Shown here: piece by piece, positions 1 to 20,060 of the stretch
How positions within the stretch are numbered: the stretch's first letter is position 1
Layout: each line of letters begins with the position of its first letter
From: Blastocladiella emersonii ATCC 22665
Lineage: Eukaryota; Fungi; Blastocladiomycota
Reading direction: 5' to 3'
Assembly (NCBI GenBank): GCA_025594325.1
Contig: JANHCV010000008.1
Span: 248,001 to 312,000 of the forward strand
Length of the DNA stretch: 64,000 nt
Program-made: the position numbers and the translations under genes
Notes under the pieces: model-generated
Told to the model about the DNA's origin: nothing
Database searches by the model: none
What the model saw: only the letters and a program-made list of their open reading frames with translations

Positions 1-828
1 CGTCGCCGTCGACCCGGCAAAACGCCCGATTTGGATACAAAGCTGGTCTGCGCTCACCCCAATTCCCGGAACCTCGCCGAAGCGGTTTTGGATGACCTTT
101 TGGGAGCCGCTAAAGCATCTGGAGACTTCAGAGATGCTCGCCATCAGCGTCGCAATCAAGAAAGTCTTTCTCAGCAAGTTTTCGATGCTCCCTGATTCTC
201 AAGACCCGAAACTTGCCGCCATGGTCTCGAGCGATTCCGCGACCGTTTACAACATCGCCTTTCGCCTTCGGCACGCCCTCTTCCCGAACCCAGCGCCGCA
301 TCGGCGGCGAACGAACCCGAATTTGCGCATTGCGCGTACAGCTCGCTTTGCGGCCGCGCACGCTCCCGCTCACCTTTGCCACGGCGCAACCGTGAATATC
401 GCAGTCCGCCACAACTCAGGTATTCCGCCGCTGCAGTTCCCTTCAGCTCGCAATCGCTTGATTTATGTGCTTATTTTATTGCAAACACTTTGCGGTGTTC
501 GCTCCCGACGCGGATACCCATTCCATCCCTCGCTGTCGCCGCTCAACGAACGTGGAGTTCATCGCCTCCAAGGTCCTTCTTGGGCTCATGCAAATGGGTC
601 ACTTCCCGCCGCGGGAGGTGATGCGGACCACCTTGCACGCGACGCTCACCGTCATGTCCCTTGGAACGCGCATCGCGTGCTGCCGCCGAGGAGTGGCGCT
701 CGTCATTGGATCGAGGCAACTTGCAGTTCGCGAGCCAGTACCTCGCGGCCATTGCCGAGTTCCCAACCGAAGGTTTCGGGTGGCGGCTCGTCGAGATTTG
801 GTGCATCGTGGATTCCCAGCTCGGATAG
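1..828 (+). pseudogene. Family A copy A0, 5'-truncated by the window edge, frameshifted
   Basis: Frame 2 from base 2 reads RPIWIQSWSALTPIPG..FWEPL..VAIKKVFLSK, the family A core. The knuckle (YCKHF..H..C) and the terminal YLAAIAEFP..LVEIW..stop(826-828) lie in other frames. A 5-bp TTTAT duplication sits near 470-480. Confidence 0.85.
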
Positions 829-1116
829 TGAGTGGCCTCGGTCGGCGCATGATCCAGATTGCCCGTCGAGGCGGAGCATTGGATAATATATTAGCGTCCG
901 TTCGTTGAGCCTGAGGACCGTGTCGGCCAGCCCCCCTGATCGGCGCGCCGGGTGGAGTCGCGAAGGACGCGTCGCGCGATCACATGTTCAGCGGGTCACA
1001 CGGACATCGACTACGCGCCAGCCTTGCGCGCTGAGCGCGCGCTCCCCTTTTCCTGCACATCTACTCACGGAGAAATGTATAAACTTGATGCAATCGTAGT
1101 CGGCGCTAGTCACTCG

Positions 1117-1914
1117 ATGGATTCTCCGGCTACGCCGACAGCACAGCACCAAGCAGTTTCGCGTGAGAGTGGCACACTTGCACCGCTGCCCGTACTAGAG
1201 CACTCGCTCGAGACGCAGCTTTTGATGCAGCTCGATTCGCGACTTTCTTGCATCCATCGCGTACTTCATCAACGACTCAATGTGGCCGCGTGCACTCCTG
1301 GCCTTGACTTGCACATGCATTCCAGCCAATCGCATCCGTCAGCACCAAACGCGGCGGAAATGACGCACACGATCCACTCGCCAAGCGCCCAAGCGTTGCT
1401 TCATCGCAACAAACCAAATGAATTGTCGCTCTTGACACCATCGGAAACCCGACCACAGTCAACGTGTTCGACGACCATGGCCCGCAATGCGAAGCTAGCC
1501 CGCGCCCTCGCAAAGCCCTGCCTGTACTGTCTCAACATCCGATCGGCCGCTCGTGGAGCGCGCGATCACACGCTGGCTCGTTGCAAGTACGCCGCCAGAG
1601 TGGCCGACGTCGCTGGAACTATCTTCTTTGGACTGCGGCAGTTGCCGGGCTTCCCACCCAAAGACTCCATGTGCAGCCGCTCGTACGAGACCCTGAGCGC
1701 CCTCAGTCACGATTACGCAGAGCGCACGCGTCGATTCCACGCCGACACGTTCACTATCTCCACAGTCAAGTCCAAAGCAGCCGAAAACCTCCGCTTCGCA
1801 AACCTCGTGCTTACGGCGCTGGCTGAGTTCCCGCCGACGATGGCTGAGTCGCACCTCGCTCCCGTGTGGAGGGAAGTTGTCGCGATGTGCTCGAGGTTCG
1901 GTATCCGGCTATGA
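1117..1914 (+). CDS. Family A copy A1, short form lacking the capsid-like core
   Basis: ORF 952..1914. It has the N-helix LETQLLMQLDSRLSCIHRVLHQRL, then CLYC-x12-H-x4-C and a C-terminus most like A2. Start chosen at the ATG downstream of the promoter motif at 964; exact start uncertain. Confidence 0.75.
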   Translation: MDSPATPTAQHQAVSRESGTLAPLPVLEHSLETQLLMQLDSRLSCIHRVLHQRLNVAACTPGLDLHMHSSQSHPSAPNAAEMTHTIHSPSAQALLHRNKPNELSLLTPSETRPQSTCSTTMARNAKLARALAKPCLYCLNIRSAARGARDHTLARCKYAARVADVAGTIFFGLRQLPGFPPKDSMCSRSYETLSALSHDYAERTRRFHADTFTISTVKSKAAENLRFANLVLTALAEFPPTMAESHLAPVWREVVAMCSRFGIRL

Positions 1915-2400: not shown

Positions 2401-2424
2401 GAGACGCGTTTTGAAATCAGGTGA
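2401..2424 (+). promoter_or_regulatory. Bipartite motif GAGACGCG-N8-TCAYGTGA (+ strand copies also at 964, 4261, 4701, 7460, 9162, 15998, 17923, 49897)
   Basis: Fixed 8-bp spacer. Found ~80-220 bp upstream of family A starts and oriented with the gene. Confidence 0.75.
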
Positions 2425-2512
2425 CGAGGTTTGGGGCGGTGGGACACCAACTGATCGCCGCGCGCGCGCCGTGGCTCCCCTCCCTCACACACCATTCAAT
2501 GCAACAATTGCC

Positions 2513-4144
2513 ATGGAATCACTACATGCAAAAGACTCGGACGGACTTGCGTTTATGGGCTCCCCGGTGGCGCCAGCTTCGTTCGACCATGCCCTGCCGC
2601 CGGCCTACGAGGCGGCAGCGGACGGCGTACAAGGACACTCACCCGAGCAACTCGTTTTGGCTCAACTTGAATCACGGCTTTTCTATATCCGTGGAGTCTT
2701 ACGGCAGCGGTTACAACGGGCTGAAACCGCGCTCGTGCTTGATCCGCTCGATAGTCGCTCTGGTGTCGCGGCGGCCGACGAGCTTGACCGCTCCAGCGAG
2801 GGCTCAATCTCTCGACCGGCTACCGCTTCGAGTATGAGCTCTTCTCCTCAGCGCAAGCCTTTTTCGCATTCCTCGTCTCGTTTTTCATCCCCTGGTCGGC
2901 CGCTGCTCGACAAACTCGTTTCTCGCGCCGATCCGGCTCCAGCCGACACGCCAACGACACTCAAAGCGCTAGTAGAGACTCGTGGACCGTACTTCAGAAT
3001 CGCAGCATCGCCGGGTCGGCGCACGACCAACAAAGCGCGCGAGTTTCTTGACTGGATGAGGCGGCTCATCCCTGCTGATCACCTCGCTAGTGCGCTGATT
3101 TTCGCCAAGCCGAACGTACACCCCGATGACTATCTTGCGTATGCTGTCTTGCTCATCAAGTCGCACTCCGATTCAGTTGCCGCGCATCACTTCCACAACG
3201 CCGTCAATAAGGGCTCACGCCCTCCGTGGATCCGAGACTGGGTTGCCATCCAGCCACGGCCCGGACAATCGTTGAAGCACTTCCAGGCGGCCGTCTGGAA
3301 CTTGTTCCTGCAGTCGAAATCGATCGCGCTTCTCGTCAATAGCCCCGTGTTCAAGGAACTGTTCGTCGAAAAGTTGACTGGTCTTTATCCCGAAGCGTGC
3401 AGCGAGCGTGTCGCCGCGCTGGTTAAGAGCGCTCACTGCTCGTTTGCTGATATCGTGGACGAGCTCAGCCGGCTTCTACACCCCGCGAAGCCTGCTGTAG
3501 AGCAAGAGCAGTTGGTCCCGCCTCGCGATCAATCTCGCTCGCGTGGCAGGAGCAGGTCACCTGGCAAACAAAATCGACTTGGTTCGCTTGACCGTTCCCG
3601 CCGCTCTCGCTCAAGGTCGCGAGGCCGCTCGCATTCCAATCGATCTTCCAACGGCACTTCTCAACCTCGCGGGTCTTCACGGGTCCCTGCCTCAGCTCAA
3701 GTCGATCTTGACAATGACCGGAAATTAAATCGCGCGCAGGAGGCACCGTGCCTGTACTGCGTCACCCTAGGAATTCCTTTCAGCAAAGCTAGAGCACACA
3801 CGCTCATCGGATGCCCGCATGCCGCTGACACAGATCGCGTCGCCGGATCAATCTTCTTTGGGTTGGAGTTGCTTCCGTCATTCCCGGCCAAGGTCACCAT
3901 GCTCAGCAGGTCGTACGACACGCTGACTGAGCTCGCACTCGTTTGCGCGGACCAAGTAAGGCTGACGCGGTTCGACAGCACTCGCCGCCCTGTGCTTACA
4001 GCAAAACAGCTCGTGTCGCTTCGTTACGCGCAACTCCGACTCACCGTTCTCGCCGAGTTTCCTCCCGCGATGCTCAACACGCATATCGCGCCCGTGTGGG
4101 GAGAGATTGTTGCAATTTGCAAAAGGCACAGAGTCTCGTTGTAA
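2513..4144 (+). CDS. Family A copy A2, Gag-like protein
   Basis: ORF 2234..4144 with all family A motifs (GPYFRIAASPGR, RPPWIRDW..QPRPGQSL..F, RS tract, CLYC..H..C). ATG 2513 lies downstream of the motif at 2401. Confidence 0.85.
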   Translation: MESLHAKDSDGLAFMGSPVAPASFDHALPPAYEAAADGVQGHSPEQLVLAQLESRLFYIRGVLRQRLQRAETALVLDPLDSRSGVAAADELDRSSEGSISRPATASSMSSSPQRKPFSHSSSRFSSPGRPLLDKLVSRADPAPADTPTTLKALVETRGPYFRIAASPGRRTTNKAREFLDWMRRLIPADHLASALIFAKPNVHPDDYLAYAVLLIKSHSDSVAAHHFHNAVNKGSRPPWIRDWVAIQPRPGQSLKHFQAAVWNLFLQSKSIALLVNSPVFKELFVEKLTGLYPEACSERVAALVKSAHCSFADIVDELSRLLHPAKPAVEQEQLVPPRDQSRSRGRSRSPGKQNRLGSLDRSRRSRSRSRGRSHSNRSSNGTSQPRGSSRVPASAQVDLDNDRKLNRAQEAPCLYCVTLGIPFSKARAHTLIGCPHAADTDRVAGSIFFGLELLPSFPAKVTMLSRSYDTLTELALVCADQVRLTRFDSTRRPVLTAKQLVSLRYAQLRLTVLAEFPPAMLNTHIAPVWGEIVAICKRHRVSL

Positions 4145-4403
4145 AAGCAGACGGGAGCGGTTCGGCGTTGTTTCCCAAGGCCTTCCGAATTAAATAGATT
4201 GCGTATTGTAAGACGTAGGGCGGGGTTTGGCGCATGAGAGTTGAGAGGAAACTGAGGACGGAGACGCGTTGCGAAATCATGTGATGCGGTTCAGCGGTTG
4301 AAAACGTAGCAGGCTCGCCGTTATGTTCTCGCTCTCCGCAAGTTTCCAAACAGTTGACTCCGTACTGATATCTCGCCCTGCAACCGATTATGAAGCTTCC
4401 AAC

Positions 4404-4630
4404 ATGAAGGGTAGGCTGCCCGGTTCAACGGCCCGTTTCGCTTCTGTGCGGTTGAGCCGCGATCAAGCAGTTGCACACAGCGGAGCAACCCATTCGAACA
4501 GCAATTGCTTACGCAGCTACAGAGGCGCTTTGCTCGCATCCACTGCGCGCTGCAGTCCAGGCTGCGTACTACGGCTAGTGCGGAGCGCGGAGCACGCGCT
4601 TCCACCTGAATCGCGTCTACCCTTAAAACT
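4404..4630 (+). pseudogene. Family A N-terminal remnant
   Basis: One frame near 4490-4570 reads FEQQLLTQLQRRFARIHCALQSRL, matching the family A N-helix. It has its own promoter motif at 4261. The rest of the gene is missing. Confidence 0.65.
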
Positions 4631-4848
4631 TGCATTCAATCCTTTGCTGGAACCGTAGCAAGTTCTGTCGCCTCCGCTTGCGACTGGCAAGGCTGCCTGC
4701 GAGACGCGACGGGAAAACACGTGAGTGGCTTGCCGGTGGGCGAAGTGGCGGCCGTTCGTCGGAGGCGACGTTGACTCTCCCGCGTGTGTCCACAGTATGC
4801 CTGCTGGCCTCATGTAACTTTTCGCGGACTGCCTGCAATGTAACACGA

Positions 4849-7263
4849 ATGGAACATACGCTACATATCAATGAATGCGCGCCCGCGTCGCCCAAACACG
4901 GCCCTCAGCTTGAACTGCCCGCTTCGGGCGAGGGGCGGCGTGCGCTGCTGACGGCGAGTCTTGTCCGGCTTCTTGATGCTCGAATTGTCAGCATCCGGCT
5001 GCACCTTCTGTCTCGGACTGACTTCGGGAGTTCGGCTGCCATGCTAGCTGCTGATGCGACAGTGCATGAGCTTGAAGCGCTTTGCGACCGGCTGGCATCG
5101 GAGCTTGATCTGGAACACGCGCAACCAACCTCGAACCCAGACGGGTCTCCCTCCCTTTTGCCAGGAGTCACGGACGACCCCAAGCTGCCCCTCGAAGATC
5201 GCGTGCGACGTTACGGCCCGCTCTTCCGCCTGCCTGCACGTCCAGGGCGCGTTTCAACAAACGATCCTCGCGCCTTCATCGGCGCGCTTTGCAGGTTTAT
5301 CCCATACCATTCCGTGGCCGAATTGCTTCTCATGTCCCGCGACAACATGCCTCGTGACGATTTCGTCGCTCTTGCGCCGCTTCTAACTCCTGATATAGCA
5401 TCACACATGGCTGAAGAGGCCTTCATCGTTGCTACAAATCCAGCATCTCATCCGACCTACCTCACAACTTGGATTTCACTCGAGCCGCAGCCTGGAACTC
5501 GCCTCGAGCACTTTCAACGGCAATTTAGCGACGTGCTCCGGAGGATGAGCAGGTATCAGTCACTCCTGAGTTGTTCCCACATCAAGGAGATTTATCTTTC
5601 CAAACTTGCCGCGCTCCCGGCATCGTGTGACCCAGCCGTCGTAGCCTTGGTTGACCAGCAGGGTAAATCGATTGGCGACATTACAGCTTGTCTCGGCAAC
5701 CCAACCATTCCCGCTGGGTCCTCGCATGCAATTGAAGGCGGCGACACCTTTGGACCAAAATCACCCTTGAAGCTCCCGTCGCCAGTCCAATCTTCGCCGG
5801 CGGCGCGGCATTCTCGCAGCGCGGACGAACGGTCGCAAGCACGGTTATCCTCCATAGCCCCTGATGCTCGGCCGACATCGCAGTCCCGCTCTCGCAACGG
5901 CCGGCATCGATCACGCTCTCGCTCAAGATCTCGCTCCAGATCTCGGTCGCGCTCTCAGTCGCGTCGGCGCAGGAAGCGCCCTCGATCGCCGTCTCGGTCT
6001 AGAAAACGGTCTCGGTCACGCTCGAAGTCGCGTCGGCGGAGGAACCGGACTGAATCGCCGTCCCGGTCTCGGAGCCGCGCTCGATCGCCATCTCGCTCTC
6101 CTCGGCATCGAAACGATAGCGTTCGTTCGCGCCAGCGCTCGCGTTTTCGTGCTCGATCAAAACCACCTCGGAAGCGACTTGAGCTGCCCTTGATGCTCAA
6201 GAGGTCGCTTGGAAAGCTGGAACCACCCGACCGCACCACAATGTCTTCTGCTGCTCCACAGCAAGGTGCTTCGCTTGAAAACATCAACAAAAATGAGACG
6301 CTGTTCCGGCTCCCACCGAAACCAGGCCAGACGACCACCGATTGCTCACGCGAGTTTCTCAAGGATCTCCGCACAAAAATGTCACCCCTCAATTTGTCCA
6401 CTGCCCTCACCCTCGCGCAAGATCGAATGCCGCGCGACGTGTTCCTCGCGTGTGCACCCTTCTTGCACCCTGAGTTGGACAATGCGGACGCGACACGGAC
6501 GTTCGTTGATGCAGCCGATCTCTTGGGTCGACCTCAACCTCGCTGGCTCTCGGACTGGATCGCGCTCGAGTGGTCGCCTGGTCAATCGCTTGATGACTTT
6601 CACACGCACTTCTTGATTCCGTTCAGGCTGCTTGGCACGATGAAGCTGTTGATTGCGCAGACGCACATCAAGACCATCTACCTTGAACGACTTGCGCGCC
6701 TGCCCGAATCGCACGACCCAAAGATTACCACCATGGTCAAGAACAAGCTCATTTCCATCTTCGATATCCAGGCCCGGCTTGAATCGATGCTTCCCGCCTC
6801 CGCCCTCTCAGCGCGCCCAACTCCGCCGCCTCCCTCAAGCGCCAACGATCCTCTCACCTTGGCTATGCACCGGGCGCCGTGCGGCTACTGCATCCACTTC
6901 CCGCCGCTCCGAATGCGGGCACAGAACCATGCGATGGTCGAGTGCACGACCGCGAACAATCTCAAACTGATCATTGAATCGATTCTGCTCGGCTTTGTGA
7001 CCGTGAGCTCGTTTCCTCCCTTGGACGTCATGGCCCGTGGCTCGCACAGCGAGCTCATTGCGCTCGCGTCCAACTGGGCTGCTCGTCTTAGGAAACAGGC
7101 AACGTTGAGTCGCGGTCTACCGTGGAAGGAGCGCGAGTAGATGTCCCATGCCGCCATGTACCTGAGTGCGGTCGCGAGATTCCCCATTCAGCTGCACACA
7201 ACGCGGGTTGTGCCGATCTTTTCGCAGCTCGCGGTGTTGTGCGAACGTACGACCCAGAGTTAA
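4849..7263 (+). CDS. Family A copy A3, tandem duplicated core domain, premature TAG at 7138-7140
   Basis: ORF 4630..7140 has two cores (GPLFRLPARPGR.. and TLFRLPPKPGQ..), a long RS tract and CGYC..H..C. The homologous C-terminus (MYLSAVARFP..) continues in frame after the TAG to TAA at 7261-7263. Confidence 0.8.
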
Positions 7264-7572
7264 TGTAATATTCTTCCAAAGGTTGTGGTGTCAACGACGG
7301 CTGAGAATTCCTGAACGCTCGAAATTTGCTTGGGCCGCAGCAGCAGGCAGCGCGGAACCAGCGTTGTTAAAAAATTATCGGATTTCAGTATCCTCATTAA
7401 CACTCGCCGGCGCTCGTAGCCCTGGGCCCAGCCGTGGCCTCGTGTCTCGCACGGGGTGAGAGACGTGTTGCGGAATCAGGTGATCAGCTTGCGCCACCCC
7501 GCTGTTTGATCGCCGCCGCCGTGACGCCCACAACTCTTTCTCTCGCAAAGGTATGAAATCGTCCATGTAACT

Positions 7573-9099
7573 ATGACCTCATGCAATGAATTCGGATCGG
7601 GCCATCCAGCTGATCAAGAGCTTGGTCGTGCCGCGGCCGCCATGCGCCGTTATGCGCGAGACCAGCGCCTCCCCGCTTCGTCCAAGGAGCGCTCCGAGCT
7701 CATGCAGGGCGCACTATGCAGTCTTATGGATGCTCGCTTGAGCCTCATACAGGCGGCCCTCGCTGAACGGCCGAAAACTGAAACTGGTCCTTGCTTTAAT
7801 TTTGCCGTTGCAGGCCCCGCCCGGACGATTGCCGAGCTCGAGCAGCTGCGCCGCGACTTGAAAGCTGGTTTGACTGCTTCGACTCCCCCAGCGGGATCTT
7901 CGCCCGAGCCTGCAATCAATGCGCGGGTCGAGTCCGGCCATCCGGAACGGACTGAAACTACATGGCAGCCACCCTCGCCACCGGTGCTCACGCGTTCCGA
8001 GCATCTCACTCTTGACGAGCTGGTGCAGTCTCGAGGCCCGCTTCTACGGCTCCCGGCACCGCCTGGACGGTGGTCAACCGACTCCCCGCGCGATTTCGTC
8101 GACCGCTTGCGCACCCTCGTTCCAGCGGGCCAACTCGCGTGCGCACTGCTTAAATCCAAGGAAAATGTCCCGCTCAAGGACTACCTTGCGTTTGTCGTCC
8201 TTGTATTTTCCGATCAGCCCGATGTGGTCGCGGAGCGGCAGTTTTGTCTCGCTCTTGACATTGCACGTCGCCCGGCGTGGGTGCAGCTCTGGATTGACTT
8301 GGACCCGGCACCCGGTTCGTTGGTCGACTCGTTCTACCAGCAGGTTTGGGGCGTCTTTCGCATTTCAGGAAAATCGACGAGTTTGCTCAATGCTCCGCAC
8401 ATCAAGCAATTGTTCGTCGACAGGCTCTCAGCGCTGCCCGAGACGAGCGATCCGAAAGTTTTCTTGCTTCTCAAGAGCTCGCAATATTCGGTAGCGGACA
8501 TTGCCGAGGAGCTCGGCAAATTGCGCATTCCCGCAGTAACCAACAACATCTTCGAGTCGCAGCCATCTCATACTCGACGCTCGCGCCCTTCATCGCCTCG
8601 TCAGCGGGATGCAAGCCTGCCTCGCCATCGCAGCCGCTCTCGGACCCGCGATCCTCCAACAGAACACGCACCAGAGCCCCGCGACGACCCAAGACTGCTG
8701 CGCGCGGCTCAGGTTCCGTGCACTTACTGCATCCGGTTCACGGCTCTGGAGCGAAACGCGCGGATGCACTCGCTCGTAGCCTGTACCCGCGCTGCCGATG
8801 TCGGACGCATTGCATGTTTGGTGCACAGTGGCCTGCGGCAGCTCCAGCAGTTTCCCACCGATGAGCTCATGCGGAGCGGCTCGTACGAGATCCTAGTTGC
8901 GCTATGTTCCCGCTACGCTGCAGTGGCCTACGCCCAGTGCAAGTTCAGGAGTCGGTCTGAAGCTCGGTCCCTGGAAAACATGGCCGTGTGCCTCGAAGGG
9001 TTCGCGGATATGCCAGCGGAGATGCTTACGTCGCACCTGGCGCCGATGTGGGAGAATGTGTGCAGCTTGCGCCGCGATTGGCGAGCTCCTTTGAAGTAA
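7573..9099 (+). CDS. Family A copy A4, apparently intact (508 aa)
   Basis: Single ORF with all family motifs. Promoter motif at 7460. Confidence 0.88.
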   Translation: MTSCNEFGSGHPADQELGRAAAAMRRYARDQRLPASSKERSELMQGALCSLMDARLSLIQAALAERPKTETGPCFNFAVAGPARTIAELEQLRRDLKAGLTASTPPAGSSPEPAINARVESGHPERTETTWQPPSPPVLTRSEHLTLDELVQSRGPLLRLPAPPGRWSTDSPRDFVDRLRTLVPAGQLACALLKSKENVPLKDYLAFVVLVFSDQPDVVAERQFCLALDIARRPAWVQLWIDLDPAPGSLVDSFYQQVWGVFRISGKSTSLLNAPHIKQLFVDRLSALPETSDPKVFLLLKSSQYSVADIAEELGKLRIPAVTNNIFESQPSHTRRSRPSSPRQRDASLPRHRSRSRTRDPPTEHAPEPRDDPRLLRAAQVPCTYCIRFTALERNARMHSLVACTRAADVGRIACLVHSGLRQLQQFPTDELMRSGSYEILVALCSRYAAVAYAQCKFRSRSEARSLENMAVCLEGFADMPAEMLTSHLAPMWENVCSLRRDWRAPLK

Positions 9100-10176: not shown

Positions 10177-10700
10177 TCGACTTGCTGCAATGTAAATGGC
10201 ATCGAAGGCGCTGCGTAATACTGCGAGCTTGCGGCCGCGGCGAATGCGATGCGCCAGTTCGACTTGACGCAGGAAATTCCCTCGGCTCGCGAAGAGCGAG
10301 AGCGCCTTTTGACGGGCAGCCTTTGCCGGCTCTTGGAAACCCGGTCAGCATACATCCGACATGTCCTTGAGCAGCGGCTGAACCCAATCTTGGATGGCGT
10401 GGCCAGTGTGCATCGCCGAAACGGCTCCCAGCCATTGGTCCTTTGCGCATCGGTTGGCGCAAACCCTTGCGCGAACCCCCCTTGCGCGACCCGTTGCGCG
10501 AGGGTTTGCGCAAAGGGGCCGATGTTGGGCACCATCGAGACCCCATGTATGCGCAAACCAGGGCCTCGGTTCGCGCAAACGTTGGCGCAAGAGGTCGCGC
10601 CTGGTTCGCGCCGCCGGACGCGCTGCGCCTCAATATAGAATAACGTGCTCACCTTGTTAGGCATTCCGATAGACCGATTCGAATAATAGCTCTGTATCAA

Positions 10701-11610
10701 TCATGATACGCCCCTGCGCGCGGCCGCCGCCGCGCCCGACCGGCCCTCGCGGCCACAGCTCGCCCGTGGCCACCACCGCCGCCGCCACTCCTTGAACTTG
10801 ATGCTCGAGAACCGGTTCTTGAGCTTGGTCTTGATGCCGCCGACGCGTGGCCGCCCGTGTCGTGGTAGTCGGTCGAACTTGAGCGGGTCGAGCGTGTCGT
10901 GGTAGTCGGTCGAACTTGAGCGGGTCGAGCGCGCGCGCTTGATGGCCGCGCGGTGGCCGGCGCCCTTGATCGCCTTGAGCGACTTGATCTCGAACACGGC
11001 GTCGGCGATGGCCACAGTCGCGGGCCGTCGAAGCGAGCCGAGCTCGGACTGGTGCGCCGCCGACTGTCGTTGCCCTGGTGCGGAGGGGCAAGGGGTCAGC
11101 GACGCCGAGCGTGAGAGGGGCGGTGGGTGAGAGACGTACGGCGTGGTCATGGTGGCCGAGGGTGCCTTGTCCTTGCACTGCAGCGAGTCGAGGACCTTGG
11201 TCTTGTTGATGTTGGCGCCAGCAAGCTGCCGGTTGATCTGCAGTGAGACGCGTACGTGCGTGTTAGCGAGGGGCTCGAAGCGCGCATCCTAGGCCGCGGA
11301 CCAGGTCGAGAACGCACCGTGATCGAGCATGCCCTGGATCTCGCTGTATTTGGACCTCGAACGCCTTGGCGAGTCCGAGGAACAGCACGTCAGAGTCGAT
11401 GACCATGGTCGGGGCCGTGGTTGCCGTTGCTCGAGGTCTTCGGCCGTCGCGGACGCGTCCTTGGTGACCATGGCGGTACAGTCGGTGATCGAGTCGAGCT
11501 TGGCCTCGCCGACGCCTTGGGCACGCAGACGACGGTGCCCACGAGTGCCGACACCCGCAGCAAGTGAGAAAGCGTACCGCATCGCCAAGCAGCTTGGCGG
11601 CCTTAATCAC
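10701..11610 (-). pseudogene. Second (accessory) gene of the Plavaka element, frameshifted
   Basis: GC3-rich coding-like segments in several minus-strand frames (MVIDSDVLFLGLAKAFEV; INRQLAGANINKTKVLDSL; VFEIKSLKAIKG). A 37-bp tandem duplication at 10856-10929 shifts the frame. Boundaries approximate. Confidence 0.4.
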
Positions 11611-12563
11611 AACGGCGAGGAACGTGGTCGCTACACCACCGAGGACGCGTCAGAAAGCGGGTCGAACCGTAGCCTCGGCGATACACGCGCACACCTTGCC
11701 GAACTCGGCCGTGCACGCGCTTGGCGAGGCCCTTGTCGAACAGCCCGGTCGAGTCCGCTGCGTGGCCATGGACGCGTCGCCGAGACGGCCGATCGCGTGT
11801 CACACGAGGCGCGCTTGGGCACGGGTCAGCACGAGCGCTCGGTCGGAAGTGGTCTAAACAAGTTGGGCGACGTGGGGAACGAGTGAGCGGTGTTCGAGCG
11901 GCACAGCAGGGCGGCGAGTGATTAGGGGGTGATGACGGGCGCAACCGAGCCGATCCGCCGCGGAGGACAATCGGCAGCGGTCCCGCGCGTGGCGAGGTCG
12001 ATGAGTGTCGAGGGGAAGGGCGGAAGTGGGGCGGATGAGTCGACGGAAAACGCGCGCTCGCGCCGACTCAGCACGACGCGGATGCACCGCCGCAGCGGCG
12101 ACGTACGCCTCCTTGGTGGCCCCGGGCACGTCTCGGGGGTCGGTTCGTCGTCGCAGGCGAGCGTGGAGGCCGCGGACACGACTTGGGCACGGCGAGCGAC
12201 GCGGCGAAGCTGGCCTCACGACGCGGGCGCCGCCATGGCCGACGCGGCGCGGGCAACGTACGGGCGGGGCTGCGTGCGAGTCGCAAGAGCAGAGTGTGTC
12301 GATTGCATGGTGGTAAGTGGGGTCGGGCGGGGACTTGGCGGGTCGGCGGGAGCGGCAGCCATCCGCGCCCAACGCGCGCGCTGAAGAAGGATCGGCGGCG
12401 GACGAAAGCGTCACGTGGCATGACCTTCGCGTCCCTCGCCTCCCTCACCGCTCGACGCACCATGCAATCCCATCTTGCGACTTTATGCAACCGACCTGAA
12501 TTACCGAGCTCTACCTCTTGCTATGCCTGACGCTGTCAAATCTGTGTGTTTGTGCTCACACAG

Positions 12564-13989
12564 CTCCGATCTCGCCGTCGGAACTCGTCAAGTTCACAGT
12601 TCTCACGCTCGATGAGCTCCACTGCACTCTGCTCCGCGGATCAGCGCCGAGCGACCGGTCGCCCGAGTACGCTGAACTGGCCCTCGGCTGGTTCGACCAG
12701 GCCGCTCGCCTTGTGTGCGCGCGCCTCAACAACTACACCATGATCCACACGCCCAAGTACCACTGCTTGAGCGAGTACGTCGAGTTCATCAAGCGCTTCG
12801 GCCCTACCACGAACCTGTCGACCGAGGCGAGGGAGCGCTTGCACAAGTTCAACGCCAAGATCGTGGTCAAGTTCACGAACTACACGGCGACCTCGACTGA
12901 GCAGATTTTATCACGCATGGCCTCGTGCGAGGCCCTGCAAGCGATCGTGCGCACGCTCGTGAGGGAGTGCGACCCCGCGGTTCAGATTCGCTGACTCTAG
13001 CGCGCCGTGGAGCATCACTAACGCTCACATCGTCGCGATCGCATCACAGGAATACGAGGGCGTGGAAGAGATATTCAACAACCTGACCGACGTGCTCCTG
13101 ACCACGCTCAAGGCGACGACGTTTGACCTCATCAAGTTTGGTCCCGGGCGCGAGGTGCACTTCTCGTTTGGCACGACCGCGAGCTCGAGCATGGACCAGC
13201 TCTCGACCCGTATCCCGTTCCTCGCCCAGATCCTCCATGGTTACGTGGCCAAGAACGCTGGACTCTCGGCGCAGCGCGCGGCCGACGATCCGCTGCTGGG
13301 TCCTGACGACGGCAAGGTACTCGCGTGCGCGCGAACTGTATTGCAAACATTTGAAGCTGACGCTCCCGCCTCGTTCCGCGTGCACCTCTTCATGTACAAG
13401 GCAATCTCGTTCGAGGCCTTCTCGCTCGGCGGGTTCCGCAACGAGCAGCTCACGGGCAAGTGCCAGTTCCCAATCCGTGGCAAGGCGCACGCGAACCGGG
13501 TCATGATACACTGCTTGCTGAGCTCGCACCGAACGATTCGGTCGCTGACATCTGCTTTCTTCTCGCGTACGGTAGTATCTCACGTCGGACAAGAAGTACC
13601 GCGTCGGGAAGCTGGCCGCCGCGCTGCACTTCACGCACAACGGCACCGAGCACAACGTGGCCCTCGTCGAGCAGTTCCGCGTCCAGGACGACGCGCCATG
13701 CGGCAACATGACGTACAAGGAAATTCCCGTACAGGCGCTCGCCTTGCATCCAGCAGAGCCGGGTATGGGCCTCGGTCGCTACCACGCCGTGAGCGTGGCG
13801 GCCTTCCAGACGTTCGTTCACGTCGTGCCCAACTACGACCGGCCCGCGGCGCCGACGACCGCAGGCGCAGCCAACTTCAAGCTCGACAGCGAGTACCGGG
13901 AGTGGCTGCTCAATCCGTTCGACTGCGCGGGGTCGGCCGCGCTCATGGCGTACCTGTGGGAGCGCGACCTGCTCGAGGTGGTGGTGTAG
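12564..13989 (+). pseudogene. Plavaka transposase, C-terminal half only (intron-containing)
   Basis: PKYHCLSEYVEFIKRFGPTTNLSTEARERLH matches the Plavaka K.H...HY...I..FG.....STE..ERLH motif. Downstream exons give ALVEQF, FVHVVPNY and WLLNPF. The N-terminal catalytic half is absent. Confidence 0.8.
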
Positions 13990-16079
13990 GGGACCCGATC
14001 GGGTCCCGCGGCGGCGGCGCGTAGCGAGCGCCGTCCCTTGCAGTATTCGCGACGAGAACGAGCTGCGGCGCGTGGAGGGCGCCGCTGGTCGAAGTACATG
14101 ACCTCGTTCTCTCAGAACATCACTCTCGCTGCCGCATCGGTGACTTGACGCGTTTCGCGTTCGCGAGCGACGCAGTCTCACGGGTCGAACACGAGTCGAA
14201 GCGCAAGACCTCTCTTCACCGCGTCAAAGTCTCAGGCAATCGCTCATAAATAGGTTGCATCAAGTCGCCGGAGCAGAAAATTCATGGTTCATACTGGTCG
14301 ATGCGTGCGTGGGGAGCGGGGACTTGGAGATGGCGAGGGCACCGACCCGGTCCGCGCGACCCTTTGCGCAAACCCTTGCGCCACTTTAGCTGGCGCCGCG
14401 GCCGGGTTTGCGCAAACCCCTTTGCGCAAAGGGTCGCGCAGCCGGAGTCGTTTCGGCGATGTGAAAGAACACGCACCCATGCTCCAGTCGATCCGTCCGC
14501 TGGAGAAGTTGGTCGATAAATTATCGGCATTACTTTCAAACGTTCCCGAGCGTACTGAGGGCCCCAAGAGCGGGCTCGTGTCACCCCCGCCCACTGATGC
14601 GCTCTCGCCCGGACTGGCCGAGCTGAGCGGGCGCAAACCCGATCGCTCCGCGAAAGACGACATCCAGCGTCACGGACCGCTTTTCCGGCTTCCCGCTCAG
14701 CCAGGTCGGTTTGCGACATGCAGCCGCCAGGCCTTTCTCGCCGAGCTCAAGCGATACACACCCTCGAACCAATTGCTAGCCAGTTCTATCCTTGCTTCGC
14801 GCGAAAACATGCCTGAAAACGACTACTTTGCGTGTGCTGCGCTCATTAATCCGACCATGCCCAACACACTTGCAGCGGATGTTTTTAATTTAGCGACCAA
14901 CGCGGACGCGCGCCCGTCTTGGATCCGCGACTGGACCCTGCTTGCCCCAAAGCCCGGTTACACGCTTGGCTGGTTTATCCAAAACTTTTGGAAGCCACTG
15001 CGGAACGCCAAGTATGCCAGGATGCCTGTGAACAGCCCCGCGATCAAGCAAACTTTTCATGACAAGATTTCAGCGCTCCCAGGAGCCAACGATCCTAAGC
15101 TTCTTGCCATGATCGAGCACAAGTACATGTCCATCTATGACATGGCCGACTTTCTCGGGTCCGCTGCGGTTTTCCCTGCAGCCAGTTCTACTTTGCCCGC
15201 CAGCCAAACGATTGCGGCAACCAAACCTGACCGCGTGCTTGATCGCGCCCCGCGCTCCCTTCGAGAGCGATCTCGTTCCAGTTCCCGAACTCGCTCTCCT
15301 CGACCGCGTATTGATTCGAGCCTGCGCCGTCGATCTCGCAGCCCGCCGCGGGCTCGCTCTCAGCAGCCACCATGCTCATATTGCAAACACTTCCCGCTTC
15401 TCGCCAACGCTGCAAGGAATCACTCACTATCAGCTTGTAAACGTGCAACAGATGAGTCCTTGATTGCCAGAAAGGTTTGCTACGGACTCAAGCTGCTGCG
15501 CAAGCGCCCATCAACGGAAGCCATGTACAGCGCCTCGCATCAATCGCTTGTCGACTTGTCCCGCGAATTCGCCGACTTGGCGAGCCAAACGGCGGATCGA
15601 GCCTACTGCACACCGCAGAACAAAGAGCACCTGGAGGACACGGCGAGGTACCTCGCTGCGATGGCCGAATTTGACGCGGCGCCGCTCGCACGGATCTGGC
15701 AAGAGGTGGATCGGCGCTTGTGACTTTGTGACTGGTGCGGTTGTGGTCGTGTTCCTAGCGCACGAATAGAACGAAGTTTTGTTGTCCCATGCGGCGGTTC
15801 AGAAAGAGACGTACATCAATCGATTCAACGCTTGTGCCAGTTGCTTCCAACAACGATTGGGCGACGAAGCGCGCGTATAGCGCATCGCTCCATGACCGCC
15901 GTCGTGAATATGTGACACTGTCCTGGACGCGGCAGGTTCGAGTGTGGGTGGCGAGAAAGGATCCGCGTCGCAGGCACAGGCCGGCTTGAACCGGAAGGCA
16001 ACGCGTTCGGAAATGGCGTGACCTTCGCGATCAATGTGGCGGTTCGCTCCCTTTTCTCCCCCAGCGACTAGACCTCGCA

Positions 16080-17612
16080 ATGCATCCCACGGACGCTTCT
16101 CGCACTTCTTGCAATGTCAACGAGATGCATGACGCGACCACTTCTTGCACTTTGGGCCCGGCAGACGCAATGGACCGGTTCGATGACACACAGGAAGGCT
16201 CGGCGCATGGAGATCCAGAGCTTGCTTCCGCCGACGACCTCGTTCGCGGTCTTGAAGCCCGTTTGGCATGTTTCCACCGAGTGCTTAACCAGCGCCCCGG
16301 ACCTTTCTCGCATGAAACGGACCCAACGAGCGATTTGGAGTCGATGGGCAGTGAAATTCAGTTCGACGCCACTACCGATGTCGTCCCGAGTACACTGCCG
16401 CGACGCTCCAAGATCATGCCAAGCTCGCTCAATGCCGTCCAGCCTGATCGGACACTTCCGGGAGCAGCTGCCACCTCTTCTCGCGCTCACGCAATCGAAG
16501 ATGATGTACTGCTCAACGGACCGTTTTTTCGGCTTCCTGCTCAACCGGGTCGTGTCGTGACCAACAAACCGGGCGAGTACCTTGGCTATCTCGCACGGTT
16601 TGCATCCACGACTCCCTTGGCCGAACTGATTCTGCTCTCTTGCGAATACATGCCTGAAATGGACTACTGCGCCTGTGCCGCGCTCATTCACCAGAACCTT
16701 CCCAAAGAGCTTGTGACCGAAGCGTTCGAATTCGCTGTTGATGCACAGACGCGTCCGACTTGGCTTCGCGACTGGACCGCTCTCGCACCAGCTCCTGGGT
16801 CGACGCTCACAGAGTTCAAGACGGCGTTCTGGAAACCGCTGAGATGCTCCGAGTTTGCCAGCGAGCTGGCCAATAGCTTCGCCGTCAACGCGATACTTCT
16901 TATCAAGCTTCCAGGGATCTCGGCTGCGCGGGACCCAAAGATTCGTGCCATCGTCCGCCATAAGCACCTGTCAATCTTTGACATGCTTGATCGCCTCGGG
17001 TTTGTTGCTCTTCCTCGCGGCAATGTGTCAAGCGCCTTCAGGTCGTTGACATCGACTATGCCCCACGGCCGCAGAGAGTCGCGCAGTCCATCTCGTTCAC
17101 CTCGTGGGTGTAATCGTCATCGCTCTCGCTCGCCGTCGCCGTCGCCTTTGTCGCGACACAACATTGGCTCCTTCGCTCGCCGTCAATCTCGCATTCCGCC
17201 GCGTACTTCAAAACTCAATGCTGGTCCGCGCATACCGCCATCCGCTTGCGGTTACTGCAAGCACTTTCCGCTGCTGTCTGCCCGAGCCACAGACCATTCA
17301 CTCTCAAGCTGCAGTCCCTCGAAGGACGTGCAGCGGATCGCGAACAAACTCCTGATTGGATTCGATTTGTTGAACTCCTATCCTTCGCAGGAAGCGATGC
17401 GGAGCACATCCACCCGCACGCTCGCTGCCATGTCACTTGAACTCTCCGAGCTTGCATCACGTGCTGTATCGACGGCCCAGCATCGTCCAGGGCACGAGAT
17501 TGAGCACTTGCGTTACCTGGGTCGGTACCTTGCGGCCATCGCCGAGTTCCTAACTGCGAATCTTGGGTCTCGTCTGGTTGCTGTGTGGAAGTATGTAGCA
17601 GTGCGTTTGTGA
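16080..17612 (+). CDS. Family A copy A6, apparently intact (510 aa)
   Basis: Single ORF with all family motifs. Promoter motif variant at 15998-16021. Confidence 0.88.
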   Translation: MHPTDASRTSCNVNEMHDATTSCTLGPADAMDRFDDTQEGSAHGDPELASADDLVRGLEARLACFHRVLNQRPGPFSHETDPTSDLESMGSEIQFDATTDVVPSTLPRRSKIMPSSLNAVQPDRTLPGAAATSSRAHAIEDDVLLNGPFFRLPAQPGRVVTNKPGEYLGYLARFASTTPLAELILLSCEYMPEMDYCACAALIHQNLPKELVTEAFEFAVDAQTRPTWLRDWTALAPAPGSTLTEFKTAFWKPLRCSEFASELANSFAVNAILLIKLPGISAARDPKIRAIVRHKHLSIFDMLDRLGFVALPRGNVSSAFRSLTSTMPHGRRESRSPSRSPRGCNRHRSRSPSPSPLSRHNIGSFARRQSRIPPRTSKLNAGPRIPPSACGYCKHFPLLSARATDHSLSSCSPSKDVQRIANKLLIGFDLLNSYPSQEAMRSTSTRTLAAMSLELSELASRAVSTAQHRPGHEIEHLRYLGRYLAAIAEFLTANLGSRLVAVWKYVAVRL

Positions 17613-18134
17613 TTTGGCCTTGTCCGTCGCCGAGCTCATACATTGCCACGGTTTGACTGGTTGCGAACACCCAGTATCGCTAGCGTGTTGACCTGAATTA
17701 ACGCGACGACCTTCAACACGGGTAAGGGGTTCTGCAGACTTGCGTGCTTAGATCGCTGAGAGGTGCAGGCCCCCCTTACACACCGCGCATCAATGCGATA
17801 CCTCCCACGTAGCGCTCCGGAAGCATGCAACCAATACAGCTTCAAGGGCTATCACCGTAATTGCCGTACTTTTATTCAAAATTGTTTGAACAGATAGCCG
17901 CGGGTAACTCCATGATATGTGCGAGACGCGTCGCGTAATGGTGTGACCGCGAACGTGACCGACGAGCTGGTGAGAAACGCGTCATGCGGCCGCGGTCTCA
18001 CCTCTCGCTCGGCCTCCCCAAGTCGACCAGCACAACCCACGATGCATCTCATGAAACAATCTACGACTTGCTGCAATGAAAATGGCACTGGCGGCACTTC
18101 TACAAACTGTTCCTTGTCCGCCGCGGCGGGTGCT

Positions 18135-20060
18135 ATGGATCAGTTCGACCTTACGCGCCAGGTCCCGCCAACGCGCGACGGTCAAGAGCGCCTCCTCGCC
18201 GGCGGTCTCTGTCGCCTGCTCTCATCTCGCATCTCCTGCATCCATGGAGCGCTTCAGCGGCGACTCGATTTCGGCCTGAAAGGCGCGGATATGCCGAAAC
18301 CCACAGCTTCAATCGAGACGGTTCACGGCATCGAAGACTTTACGAACATGATTTCGGCAATGATCGAACACTTTCCCGAGCGAAACAAAGAGCCTGTTCG
18401 CAAGGCTGTCAAATCCGTGTCGACAAGGCGATCAGCGGCCTCTCGTTCAACGCAACCCGCCAGCTTGTCTCAACGGAACCCAAACCTTTCGATCTCAGAC
18501 GACTTACGGCATAGCGGCCCGCTGTTTCGACTATCTTCTCAAGCAGCCCGCGCCGTTACGAGCAGCCAGCAAGAATTTCTCGACTTGCTACGCCACTTTG
18601 CGCCCGCGGATCCATTGGCGGACTTGATCCTTTTCTCGCGCGGCAACATGTCCGATGAGGATTACTTTGCCTGCGCTGCGCTCGTCCACCCGGCCATGTC
18701 GAACGAGGTTGCGACCGCTGCCTTCCTCGCCGCCACCGATTCTGCAGCGTGTCCGCCTTGGGTTCGAGACTGGGCCGCGCTCACGCCGGTCCCAGGAACT
18801 TCAGTCACGGATTTCAAAACCGCGTTTTGGAAACCGCTGCGGTGCTCCGATTATGCCAGCCAACTCGTCAAGAGCCCAGCTATCAAATGGATATTTCTTG
18901 ACAAGATTGCCGAGATCCCAGGCGCCCGTGAGCCGAAGTTTGCTGCCATGGCCAACAACAAGCACGACTCGCTCTTTGACCTCGTCGATCACTTCAAGCT
19001 CGCGTGGTTTCGTTCGATCGAGCCGTCCTCCTTGCCTCGTTCTTCAACTGACGCCCAAATGTGCAATTTGATGGACGCGAGCGCGCCCGAAGCGCAGGGC
19101 AAGCACTCGCGCCGCCCACCTGGCTCGGCTCGAGAGCACTCAAACTCGCGCCCGCGCTCGCGATCCCCAGTTCGCCGCGACGATTCGGGCTCCCGTCGTC
19201 AAACTGTCAGCTCTCCACGTTTCACCAACGTTACCGCTCACTTTTCGCAGCCGCTCTGCGCATACTGCAAGCACTTTCCACTTCTTTCTCTGGTCGAAAT
19301 GCATCACCCGTTCTCGACTTGCCTGCGCGCGGCCGAAGAACTGAGCGCCTCGAAAGTGATTTACTCTGGCCTCAAATTAATACGCAGCCTTCCCTCGCGA
19401 TCGGCCATGCTCAACAGTTCACACGAATCGCTCGTCGCCCTGTCCCTCGAGTACGCCGGCATTGTCCGCCACGCCGCAACCGGAAAGCGGTGCTTGCCGT
19501 ACAACAGGGAGCACCTGCAGTACACGGCTCGGTACCTCGCTGCCGTCGCTGAACTTGGCCCAGTGCCGCTGGCTGCAGTTTGGGGAAGTGTGGCCTGGCA
19601 AGCGGGACGTGCGTCATTCGAGCCGACGTACGAACGTGTTCAATTTCCTGACTCTTACCTTGCAACGAATACATTCACACTGTCCCTTATCGTGCACACC
19701 CATCTATTACATACGGGCAACGCTGCCGATCGTCGCAAAGCTCAGGGCTTCGGAATCGCTACAACCGATGCCCGGGCGGTGGCCAAGACCGCAGCCGACT
19801 GTCCGCTTGACGACAGAAGATTCGAGCTGCCGTTCTTGCGGCCGCGCGAGCTGCCCGTCGTGGTCGCGATCGAGGTGAGCAGCTCGGCCCACTTACCGCG
19901 CTCCTTGTCCGACTCGAACTGCAGCAGCCACGACTTGCCCTGGGCGAACAGCTCGACGCACCGCGGCTGCGAGACAGGCGCCGGGTCGATGAGCGTCGCG
20001 GTCAGGTCGAGGACGAAGCCCATGGCGACTCCGGACTTGTCGGGGACAAACGTGATTTGA
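18135..20060 (+). CDS. Family A copy A7 with lost stop codon (homology ends at 19607)
   Basis: All family motifs present. The codon aligned with the paralog TGA stop is GGA (19605-19607), so the ORF runs 151 more codons, antisense into the GPCR 3' end. Start uncertain (18041 or 18135). Confidence 0.75.
   Translation: MDQFDLTRQVPPTRDGQERLLAGGLCRLLSSRISCIHGALQRRLDFGLKGADMPKPTASIETVHGIEDFTNMISAMIEHFPERNKEPVRKAVKSVSTRRSAASRSTQPASLSQRNPNLSISDDLRHSGPLFRLSSQAARAVTSSQQEFLDLLRHFAPADPLADLILFSRGNMSDEDYFACAALVHPAMSNEVATAAFLAATDSAACPPWVRDWAALTPVPGTSVTDFKTAFWKPLRCSDYASQLVKSPAIKWIFLDKIAEIPGAREPKFAAMANNKHDSLFDLVDHFKLAWFRSIEPSSLPRSSTDAQMCNLMDASAPEAQGKHSRRPPGSAREHSNSRPRSRSPVRRDDSGSRRQTVSSPRFTNVTAHFSQPLCAYCKHFPLLSLVEMHHPFSTCLRAAEELSASKVIYSGLKLIRSLPSRSAMLNSSHESLVALSLEYAGIVRHAATGKRCLPYNREHLQYTARYLAAVAELGPVPLAAVWGSVAWQAGRASFEPTYERVQFPDSYLATNTFTLSLIVHTHLLHTGNAADRRKAQGFGIATTDARAVAKTAADCPLDDRRFELPFLRPRELPVVVAIEVSSSAHLPRSLSDSNCSSHDLPWANSSTHRGCETGAGSMSVAVRSRTKPMATPDLSGTNVI

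Follow-up and report, generated by a model that had tools for sequence, protein, structure and literature searches.

Stand-alone genes derived from capsids are known mainly from animals. The Gag-derived restriction factors mouse Fv1 and yeast Ty1 p22 each occupy a single locus and do not form arrays. Other proteins are comparable in part: LINE ORF1p has an N-terminal helix that may form a coiled coil, binds nucleic acid through its C-terminal part and, in some clades, has CCHC motifs, and classical or FOG-type C2HC fingers have the spacing C-x2-C-x12-H-x3-5-C on a beta-beta-alpha fold. In fungi, three co-opted gag genes, Crtg12-14, have been described, each single copy and confined to Dikarya (Wang & Han 2021, PMC8321522). 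A tandem array of domesticated totivirus-like capsid ORFs, STORM, is described for Scheffersomyces yeasts (PMC13756089).

The DNA considered here is from Blastocladiella emersonii ATCC 22665 (contig JANHCV010000008.1, bases 248,001-312,000), and this entire stretch of 64,000 nucleotides is referred to as the window. B. emersonii is a water mould-like fungus, and ESTs and RNA-seq data exist for this strain (PMC9730499). We consider the array in the window to belong to a large multigene family known only from B. emersonii; with a probability of about 0.5, the core of its proteins derives from a retroelement capsid and has diverged very far from it.

A single paralogous family occupies window positions 1-19,604 on the plus strand, as eight units of ~2 kb, each with its own promoter-like motifs, and the array extends past the left end of the window. 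Pairwise core identity within this array is 30-47%, and stop-free ORFs of ~480 codons are maintained in DNA of 59% GC. The original prediction of eight paralogues and a fragment is correct as to the family, but only four copies (A3, A5, A7 and A8) have intact ORFs, the other four of the eight being broken. The presumed fragment at 10249 is not a separate remnant; it is the 5' part of A6, which has been split by a 4-kb insertion. The features are as follows, in window coordinates.

1-908, plus strand: A1, a partial copy truncated by the window start, a pseudogene with two frameshifts; C-terminal part of the core 5-292, RS linker in another frame, CCHC and tail 465-863 in a third frame.
1117-1914, plus strand: A2, an open ORF and core-less variant; N-helix 1222-1275, C2HC finger and tail 1492-1911, without a core domain.
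2401-4144, plus strand: A3, intact; upstream motif 2401-2424, likely ATG 2513, N-helix at 2657, core 2981-3487, then RS linker, C2HC 3749-3814, tail to 4141.
4261-4590, plus strand: 5' remnant of an additional copy; motif 4261-4284, N-helix 4508-4561, stop at the end.
4849-7251, plus strand: A4, with two cores; N-helix 4963, core a 5212-5715, RS tract of 192 aa between the cores, core b 6292-6795, C2HC 6880-6945, in-frame premature stop in the tail at 7138-7140, homology going on to ~7251.
7460-9099, plus strand: A5, intact; upstream motif 7460-7483, likely ATG 7642, core 8032-8538, C2HC 8719-8784, tail to 9096.
9242-10180, minus strand: 939-bp repeat, present as an insertion in the promoter region of A6; not a family member.
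10179-10440, plus strand: 5' part of A6; proximal motif 10179-10198, ATG 10249, N-helix, break at ~10440.
10441-14447, no strand assigned: insertion in A6, ~4 kb, of higher GC.
14448-15723, plus strand: 3' part of A6; core 14668-15177, RS linker, C2HC 15373-15438, tail to 15720.
16103-17612, plus strand: A7, intact; proximal motif 16103-16122, likely ATG 16170, N-helix 16242, core 16515-17018, C2HC 17247-17312, tail to 17609.
17910-20060, plus strand: A8, intact; upstream motif 17910-17946, proximal motif 18065-18084, likely ATG 18135, core 18513-19016, C2HC 19257-19322, tail homology to 19604, ORF continuing to 20060.

Both ends of the insertion in A6 carry TTGCGCAAA-type subterminal repeats in inverted orientation. 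The insertion gave zero Pfam matches, and no second copy was detected among the fetched loci. The 939-bp repeat has an inverted copy, 100% identical, at 34132-35070. Within it, between A5 and A6 and on the minus strand, lies an RNase H-like C-terminal fragment (9394-9508) with an E value of 1.8e-5, just short of the Pfam cut-off. No LTR-like direct repeats were found in the window array, and neither Pfam nor a motif scan detected RT, PR or IN domains in the window.

A HMMER profile search of 1.84e9 representative proteins returned 16 matches, 14 of which are true relatives, all of them B. emersonii 'hypothetical proteins' on contig JANHCV010000008.1; the remaining two were rejected as repeat-driven artefacts. 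Word-indexed searches of 5.8e9 clusters yielded no further relatives, and a metagenome scan was empty for the family. The annotated members are all on one contig out of 21. Five further loci of this contig contain more same-strand tandem arrays, giving ~36 copies in 174 kb with the window included, and such arrays are spread along more than 1 Mb of the contig. The published annotation lacks the majority of copies, and the highest core identity between any two copies is 73%, with no recent bursts. The paralogue array is a real, undescribed, lineage-specific family.

No RT, RH, integrase, protease, YR, LTRs or terminal repeats were found beside the ~36 copies of the window and the five loci, and no pol-linked relative or donor element was found in the data searched. 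The description of these genes as stand-alone and amplified, with no pol or LTR, holds for all six places on the contig. Homologues are not invariably located beside pol, because the copies stand alone both in the window and at the five other loci.

The module order originally proposed (N-helix, core, RS-rich tract, C..C..H..C motif, helical tail) was recovered, and the peptides quoted in its support are all present in the sequence. The constant part of the protein consists of a ~170-aa core, a basic linker, a putative zinc-binding motif and a helical bundle of ~100 aa; an amphipathic helix at the N-terminus and the RS tract are extras that vary across the family. The linker is R/S-, K- or P-rich depending on the copy (R 15-26% and S 13-23% in the window copies). 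A single finger per protein follows the basic tract, and all members of the family share its ligand spacing of C-x2-C-x12-H-x4-C. The canonical knuckle, C-x2-C-x4-H-x4-C, is absent from the 178 kb scanned, and the assignment of a retroviral-type zinc knuckle must be abandoned given the spacing in all copies.

From a shallow alignment of 25 paralogues, all from one genome, AF2 models the core (pLDDT 91.8, pTM 0.86) as a beta-hairpin followed by ~10 helices in two lobes. The motif L.P.PG(E)..[VL]..[FY]...F, which may resemble the retroviral MHR, is conserved at the lobe junction and is followed by a long helix. The tail is modelled as a helical bundle (pLDDT 94.6) for which generic helix bundles are the sole Foldseek matches, and we know of no counterpart to it in known Gag. 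At the zinc motif the model has short helices, and the first two cysteines are not set in a beta-hairpin; no Pfam zinc-finger family is matched by the C2HC motif.

When the core was compared with the PDB using Foldseek, ~30 of the top 50 matches were HIV-1 CA, MLV CA or Arc, and in BFVD caulimovirid coat proteins or retroviral Gag, including ALV p27 and ERV Gag, accounted for at least 12 of the first 50. Capsids have the best probability and TM values in each list, but no match to the core in either library is significant (E >= 1.1, probability <= 0.33, TM <= 0.34). Pfam gave zero matches among seven full-length copies and no Gag family above threshold among 25 cores, the sole match being PNMA, at 15.4 bits against a 25-bit cut-off and colinear over 90 residues. 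No capsids were recovered in profile searches against PDB sequences. The term Gag-like is weakly supported: the capsids that head the Foldseek lists and the confident core model speak for it, and the non-significance of the matches, the Pfam result and the zinc spacing speak against it. A Gag origin of the family is plausible, at roughly even odds, and the capsid link of the predicted protein is suggestive.

These same data accommodate a somewhat unlikely alternative, that the family is an orphan and evolves fast, its members being helical zinc-finger proteins that bind nucleic acid and are evolutionarily unrelated to Gag. On this reading the capsid ranking reflects a generic two-lobed resemblance. 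The non-significance of every Foldseek match, the negative Gag Pfam and PDB sequence searches, a finger spaced 2-12-4 as in classical C2HC fingers, the generic tail and the confinement of relatives to one species would all be expected of such a family. It accounts less readily for the fact that Ortervirales capsids top two independent structure libraries with the best probability and TM values, for an order of beta-hairpin, two helical lobes, basic tract and zinc motif that parallels CA-NC, or for a sub-threshold Pfam match that falls on PNMA, itself a Gag-derived family.

The comparison of dN/dS among copies, which had been proposed as a check, gave 0.18-0.37 when the closest core pairs were used; dS is 0.56-0.93 in the two pairs that are least saturated. 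The core has evolved under purifying selection, and with omega at about 0.2-0.35 there is no sign of positive selection. GC3 is 0.57-0.70 in the window copies. Annotated copies elsewhere have 0.80-0.94, and the ordinary genes nearby 0.82-0.91. With its low GC3 and four broken copies, the window array could be largely non-functional. The word 'domesticated' in the original prediction cannot be retained, because no orthologues were found outside one genome in the protein databases searched, half of the window copies are decayed and their codon composition is atypical.

Decay of this kind might also indicate that the copies are junk rather than genes, namely dead gag or ORF1 remnants of an uncharacterised retroelement (DIRS-like, LINE-like or LTR) that lost its pol and was amplified in tandem. 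The broken half of the window array, its GC3 (low, and unlike that of host genes), the scarcity of annotated copies, and the TE insertions and RNase H-like fragment within the array are consistent with this, as is the abundance of DIRS elements in Blastocladiomycota (PMC3783388). We nevertheless regard it as improbable. The ~36 copies in 174 kb adjoin no RT, RH, IN, PR or terminal repeats, and the RNase H piece lies within a separate repeat and runs opposite to the family. Moreover, the dN/dS values are low, the units retain promoter motifs common to ordinary genes, several copies combine open ORFs with host-like GC3, and a maximum core identity of 73% leaves no trace of recent bursts.

The conserved upstream motif has nine matches in the window against 0.07 expected. 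The proposal that each unit has its own promoter motif is thus right in that the motif is real, but the motif is not private to the family, and also occurs 5' of a GPCR gene and of a second tandem family (B-C) on the minus strand. The B-C family adjoins the Gag-like family in the window and in locus L002, where genes of the two are head-to-head and ~1 kb apart, and genes for Herpes_ori_bp-like and PIF1-like helicases are close to other family members. This proximity, the shared motif and the restriction of annotated members to one of 21 contigs could point to a larger selfish or virus-derived multi-gene island on contig 8 that comprises both families and the helicase genes, but such an island is very unlikely, as ordinary genes such as those for chitin synthase, a P450 and a class C GPCR lie in between, B-C is missing from four of the six sampled places, and none of the hallmarks of a known virus or giant transposon, be it a capsid, a polymerase or an integrase, was seen.

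If the core is instead capsid-derived, it would have descended anciently from a retroelement capsid and diverged greatly while keeping a CA-like fold, with the basic tract and zinc finger in place of a nucleocapsid. A protein so built would therefore be proposed to oligomerise via the core (and the N-helix) and to bind nucleic acid via the RS linker and finger. The arrays may have expanded through unequal crossing-over, with turnover by birth and death. The likeliest working copies would be those few, at other places on the contig, whose codon composition resembles that of host genes, and the window array would be a partly decayed branch, probably weakly expressed. It is conceivable, although we think it quite unlikely, that the high-GC3 members self-assemble and package RNA as a capsid-derived fungal counterpart of Arc and PNMA, with the arrays serving as a guard against retroelements, either dosage-dependent or diversified, or in RNA transfer by zoospores. 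Such members might act jointly with the co-located, co-regulated B-C family.

Should the family descend from Gag, no earlier case would be known from an early-diverging (zoosporic) fungus, and none anywhere would be so heavily amplified; it would also have diverged beyond the view of domain-based screens. Pfam-reliant screens for TE co-option in fungi would miss it, since it has no Pfam match. It would further imply that capsid folds persist as host gene families far beyond detection by sequence methods, and its core-less, double-core and RS-, K- and P-linker forms would be natural variants for studies of capsid-like assembly. Without any descent from Gag, this would still be a protein family that has not been described before, with confident predictions for two of its domains, limited to ~1 Mb of one chromosome-scale contig in a model fungus.

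Among known systems, LINE ORF1p differs in that it contains an RRM, whereas the core of the B. emersonii family is all-helical, and no ORF2 (endonuclease/RT) or RT motif lies downstream of any copy in the window or the five loci. The spacing of the finger fits the classical or FOG-type C2HC finger, but the AF2 model has helices without strands and there is no Pfam match. STORM is also a tandem array in a fungal genome, made up of capsid-derived ORFs without a replicase; it is reported (PMC13756089) to have four ORFs, clear totivirus ancestry and a distribution across several species, whereas the B. emersonii family has dozens of copies, is confined to one species of an early-diverging phylum and has no demonstrable viral ancestry.

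The restriction factors Fv1 and Ty1 p22/p18 are Gag-only proteins free of enzymes, as the proteins of this family may be, and the core-less A2 and double-core A4 recall truncated or altered Gag that could poison assembly; the B. emersonii family differs in having no known target retroelement of related Gag. The co-opted gag genes (Arc, PNMA, RTL/SIRH, SCAN and fungal Crtg12-14) are similarly stand-alone, without pol or LTR. The family differs from them in its lack of a significant Gag match in sequence or structure and of an identified donor element, and in its non-retroviral zinc motif and extra helical tail. Syntenic orthologues across species or families, a criterion of co-option in Wang & Han (2021), were not found: every relative in the protein databases searched is from B. 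emersonii. What the family has in common with the co-opted genes is a core predicted to be two-lobed, helical and CA-like, purifying selection on the coding sequence and, in one member, a weak match to the PNMA profile; compared with the single-copy Crtg12-14, it comprises dozens of tandem copies.

The array that opens the window consists of a single paralogous family, read on the + strand from base 1 to ~19,604, as established by the ORF listing, alignment and motif scans. Its members share a module order beginning with an N-terminal amphipathic helix (L..L..R...I...L..R) and a variable linker, followed by a core of ~170 amino acids that starts at GPLFRLPA.PGR, an R/S-rich tract (R 15-26%, S 13-23%), a zinc motif (C-x2-C-x12-H-x4-C) and a helical tail of ~100 amino acids with a conserved Trp at its end. 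Core identity between window copies is 30-47%. The original prediction counted eight paralogs and a fragment; one family on one strand is indeed present, but only the units A3, A5, A7 and A8 are intact, and the supposed fragment at 10249 belongs to A6 as its 5' end; in A6 the N-helix region breaks off at ~10440 and the reading frame, homologous to A8, picks up again at ~14450. A1 is truncated by the window edge and has its core, RS tract and finger in three separate frames, and A2 is an open ORF with the N-helix and finger-tail, lacking a core. A4 contains two cores with a long RS tract (192 amino acids) between them, and its tail is interrupted by an in-frame stop (7138-7140), beyond which homology extends. 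The window array is half decayed, and also includes the following feature:

4261-4590, 5' remnant of a further copy, with promoter motif and N-helix

Members outside the window differ in their linker, which can be rich in K (P0002), rich in P (P0008) or almost missing, and the RS tract may precede the core (P0014). Given this variation, the constant unit is the core, finger and tail.

A HMMER search with the full profile against 1.84 billion representatives gave 16 matches, 14 of which are B. emersonii "hypothetical proteins" (locus tags H9P43_006651 to 006885), all on JANHCV010000008.1 in the interval from 196 kb to 1.29 Mb; the remaining two (Plasmodiophora, Chitinophaga) are multi-repeat artefacts. 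Word-indexed protein searches with full-length A6 (which RS-tract words may have swamped), the A6 core region and the 25-sequence core profile found nothing new, and metagenome contigs scanned with a single protein yielded no relative. Exact look-ups of A7 and of an 826-aa ORF from a second tandem family in the window, the B-C family, found no annotated gene; none of the window copies is in the searched library, and thus they appear to be unannotated. Six-frame HMM scans of five further loci on the contig again detected units of core followed by tail, arranged in tandem on one strand, including ~13 copies in one 25-kb locus, for a total of ~36 core-bearing copies in 174 kb, the majority unannotated. 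Among the called neighbours at these loci are genes for a chitin synthase and a P450, two that are helicase-like and many domain-less ones, but no polymerase or integrase. The helicase genes, of Herpes_ori_bp type and weak PIF1 type (L005:3927-6917 and L003:20328-20942), sit less than 10 kb from members of the family, near contig positions 196 kb and 969 kb. The window's place on the contig (1,801,506 bp) is fixed by a 588-aa ORF at 61394-63160, whose single exact match in the public gene index is at 309,394-311,160 of JANHCV010000008.1; that locus and the window are 100% identical over 3,607 bp, and window positions convert to contig positions by adding 248,000. The paper describing this 34.27-Mb, 21-contig PacBio assembly, annotated with funannotate, does not mention the family (PMC9730499). 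The family is real, undescribed and limited to one species and one contig, with two confidently predicted domains.

The first of these domains is the core, for which an AlphaFold2 model based on an alignment of 25 family sequences has a pLDDT of 91.8 and a pTM of 0.86. The model opens with a short beta-hairpin at the N terminus; five helices then lead into an extended segment, after which come five further helices. The extended segment carries a conserved L.P.PG...[VL]..[FY]...F motif, a junction motif that may resemble the retroviral major homology region. A Foldseek search of the PDB with this model yielded no significant match (best E 1.6), but ~30 of the best 50 matches are capsids, namely HIV-1 CA, MLV CA (6hww, 6hwx) and the rat Arc CTD (7r24). 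The PDB capsid alignments cover ~160 columns at TM 0.25-0.33; two lobes connected by a flexible hinge are expected to score a low global TM if they are treated as a single rigid unit. In BFVD the top match has E 1.1, and ALV p27, retroviral or ERV Gag and the coat proteins or polyproteins of caulimovirids account for at least 12 of the best 50 matches, with the highest probability (up to 0.33) and TM (0.31-0.34) in that list. A Pfam search of the cores gave one sub-threshold PNMA match, colinear over 90 residues. When two core profiles and a single member were run against PDB sequences, no capsid came up, only chance matches such as the BRD2 bromodomain, eIF3k and SptP.

The proposal of a Gag-like core, and the comparison of its model with capsid structures, thus came out in part: capsids lead both structure lists, but no match is significant (E at least 1.1, TM at most 0.34) and no Pfam Gag family is called. 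We place the probability of a CA-like fold at roughly 0.65, and descent of the core from a retroelement Gag at even odds.

The four ligands of the zinc motif are invariant in window and non-window members, with a spacing of 2-12-4. Classical or FOG-type C2HC fingers are spaced in this way, and nucleocapsid knuckles are not. The CCHC element of the original prediction is therefore present but lacks the retroviral knuckle spacing, and the proposed order of helix, core, RS tract, CCHC and tail holds in the window array, with exceptions such as the core-less A2. The finger and tail, also modelled with AlphaFold2, form a helical bundle (pLDDT 94.6) for which Foldseek found only generic four-helix bundles. 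Pfam searches found nothing with the tail alignment and nothing useful with all copies and the non-family ORFs in the array, and hhalign indicates that core and tail are unrelated.

No LTR-like direct repeats were found in the array, and Pfam and motif scans detected no RT, protease or integrase, as anticipated for the intervals between copies. A motif scan across all 178 kb was negative for the canonical zinc knuckle, the YxDD box and a strict RNase H signature, and Rfam detected nothing in the window. An active non-autonomous transposable element is rejected for the lack of terminal repeats and of recent copies (top core identity 73%), and an LTR or LINE element for the absence of LTRs, ORF2 and RT. 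A satellite-like repeat is rejected as well, since divergence between the copies is much too high for one and they were under purifying selection in the past.

That selection is visible in the closest core pairs (72-73% identity), with dN/dS of 0.18-0.32 at dS 0.56-0.93; more distant pairs, window pairs included, give 0.2-0.4 with dS saturated. These ratios point to past purifying selection on the core. Four ORFs of ~480 codons are still open in the window array at 59% GC, which is unlikely without selection. GC3 is 0.57-0.70 in window copies, 0.80-0.94 in annotated copies elsewhere and 0.82-0.91 in ordinary window genes. By composition, a minority of members are probably typical, expressed, host-like genes, and the window array may be a branch that is older or under weaker constraint, in a compartment of lower GC. 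The window as a whole is a strong compositional mosaic, in which GC reaches 70-74% in the stretches 24-28 kb and 56-64 kb against 57-62% in both tandem-family arrays, with a GC3 of ~0.9 in ordinary genes versus ~0.6-0.7 in most array copies.

Several inserts and repeats interrupt the window. Between A5 and A6, on the opposite strand, is an RNase H-like C-terminal fragment (E 1.8e-5, just below the Pfam cut-off). It lies in a 939-bp repeat (9242-10180) that recurs 24 kb further on (34132-35070) as an inverted copy of 100% identity, and so represents a separate, recent mobile or duplicated piece. This repeat ends in a GAGGGCTTTAGCCCTC hairpin, and its initial 66 nt have a further match at L006:14478-14543; it is probably part of a mobile element, recently inserted in the A6 promoter. 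The ~4-kb insert in A6 (10441-14447) is higher in GC (64%), unique among the fetched sequences and carries TTGCGCAAA/GCGCAAAC motif clusters in inverted orientation at both ends; its ORFs (e.g. 12518-12994, 13062-14024) have no Pfam match. A tandem repeat at 35711-35980, with at least ~13 copies of the 15-nt unit ACGCGCAAAGCTGCG, contains the GCGCAAAG motif common to the ends of this insertion. Further along, a 178-bp inverted repeat (99% identity; 47582-47759 and 49823-50000, ~2 kb apart) is accompanied by ORFs 47471-48208 and 49593-50903, which share an 81-aa segment; the former has a stretch that by eye is DDE-integrase-like (GVDSYSRMIFY), with no Pfam match.

Two conserved non-coding motifs precede the copies: a distal one, GAGACGCGTYGCGNNATCASG, including ACGCGT and a CACGTG-like box, and a proximal one, GACTTGCTGCAATGNAAAYG, 40-70 nt ahead of the start codon. 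The distal motif occurs nine times in the window versus 0.07 expected, and these occurrences and nearby features are as follows:

2401, 4261 and 7460, + strand, distal motif GAGACGCGTYGCGNNATCASG
23098, 29000, 30944, 36110, 46809 and 59294, - strand, distal motif GAGACGCGTYGCGNNATCASG
20079-22240, - strand, multi-exon class C GPCR gene, with 7tm_3 split over two ORF pieces, plus a ligand domain of periplasmic-binding/ANF type
26416-26503, + strand, 88-nt ARAGORN call of tRNA-Pro(GGG) inside a 755-aa minus-strand ORF

Each copy was thought to have its own promoter motif. Conserved motifs do precede copies, and the distal one is also ahead of a member at L001:6937, but six of its nine window occurrences are on the minus strand, upstream of the GPCR gene, B-C family copies and another gene. 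In both tandem families and the GPCR it is mostly directly upstream of the gene, in the gene's orientation. Since genes outside the family carry it too, it is a shared cis element not private to the family, and possibly a regulatory one.

The GPCR gene fits the GPCR expansions reported for this genome and is convergent with A8, whose read-through ORF ends 19 nt from it. The tRNA call is probably a false positive, with no Rfam tRNA at gathering score. The B-C family has six minus-strand units at 24,400-46,700, and is also found at L002:2500-7100, where a homolog lies head-to-head with a Gag-like member, ~1 kb apart. A unit consists of a B domain of ~260 aa and, after it, a C domain of ~360 aa; at 36323-38803 both are joined in a single ORF of 826 aa. 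A stop is present in two of the C copies, and Pfam and PDB sequence searches found no relatives.

The Gag-like family comprises modular proteins in tandem arrays, without enzymes and under purifying selection. Most likely, the core, and perhaps the N-helix, mediates self-association in the manner of capsid domains, and the basic RS/K tract and zinc finger bind nucleic acid, either like a nucleocapsid or like arginine-rich capsid tails. The RS tracts could allow regulation by phosphorylation, and the arrays probably grow and decay by unequal crossing-over, a birth-and-death process. Particle formation, RNA chaperoning and interference with retroelements are three candidate roles; speculatively, variants such as A2, which has no core, and A4, which has two, could poison assembly.

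Overall, the original observation is partly confirmed and its Gag interpretation partly supported, with a capsid link that is plausible. The family has neither an above-threshold Gag sequence match nor knuckle spacing, and cross-species comparison does not support the term "domesticated"; for these reasons it is filed as working like a Gag-derived family and not as a proven member. Its closest analogues are co-opted gag genes, of which a survey across the fungal kingdom recovered just three, each single copy and from Dikarya (PMC8321522). DIRS retroelements, which are abundant in Blastocladiomycota (PMC3783388), are a candidate donor. In yeasts, capsid ORFs derived from a totivirus are described as forming a tandem array (PMC13756089).
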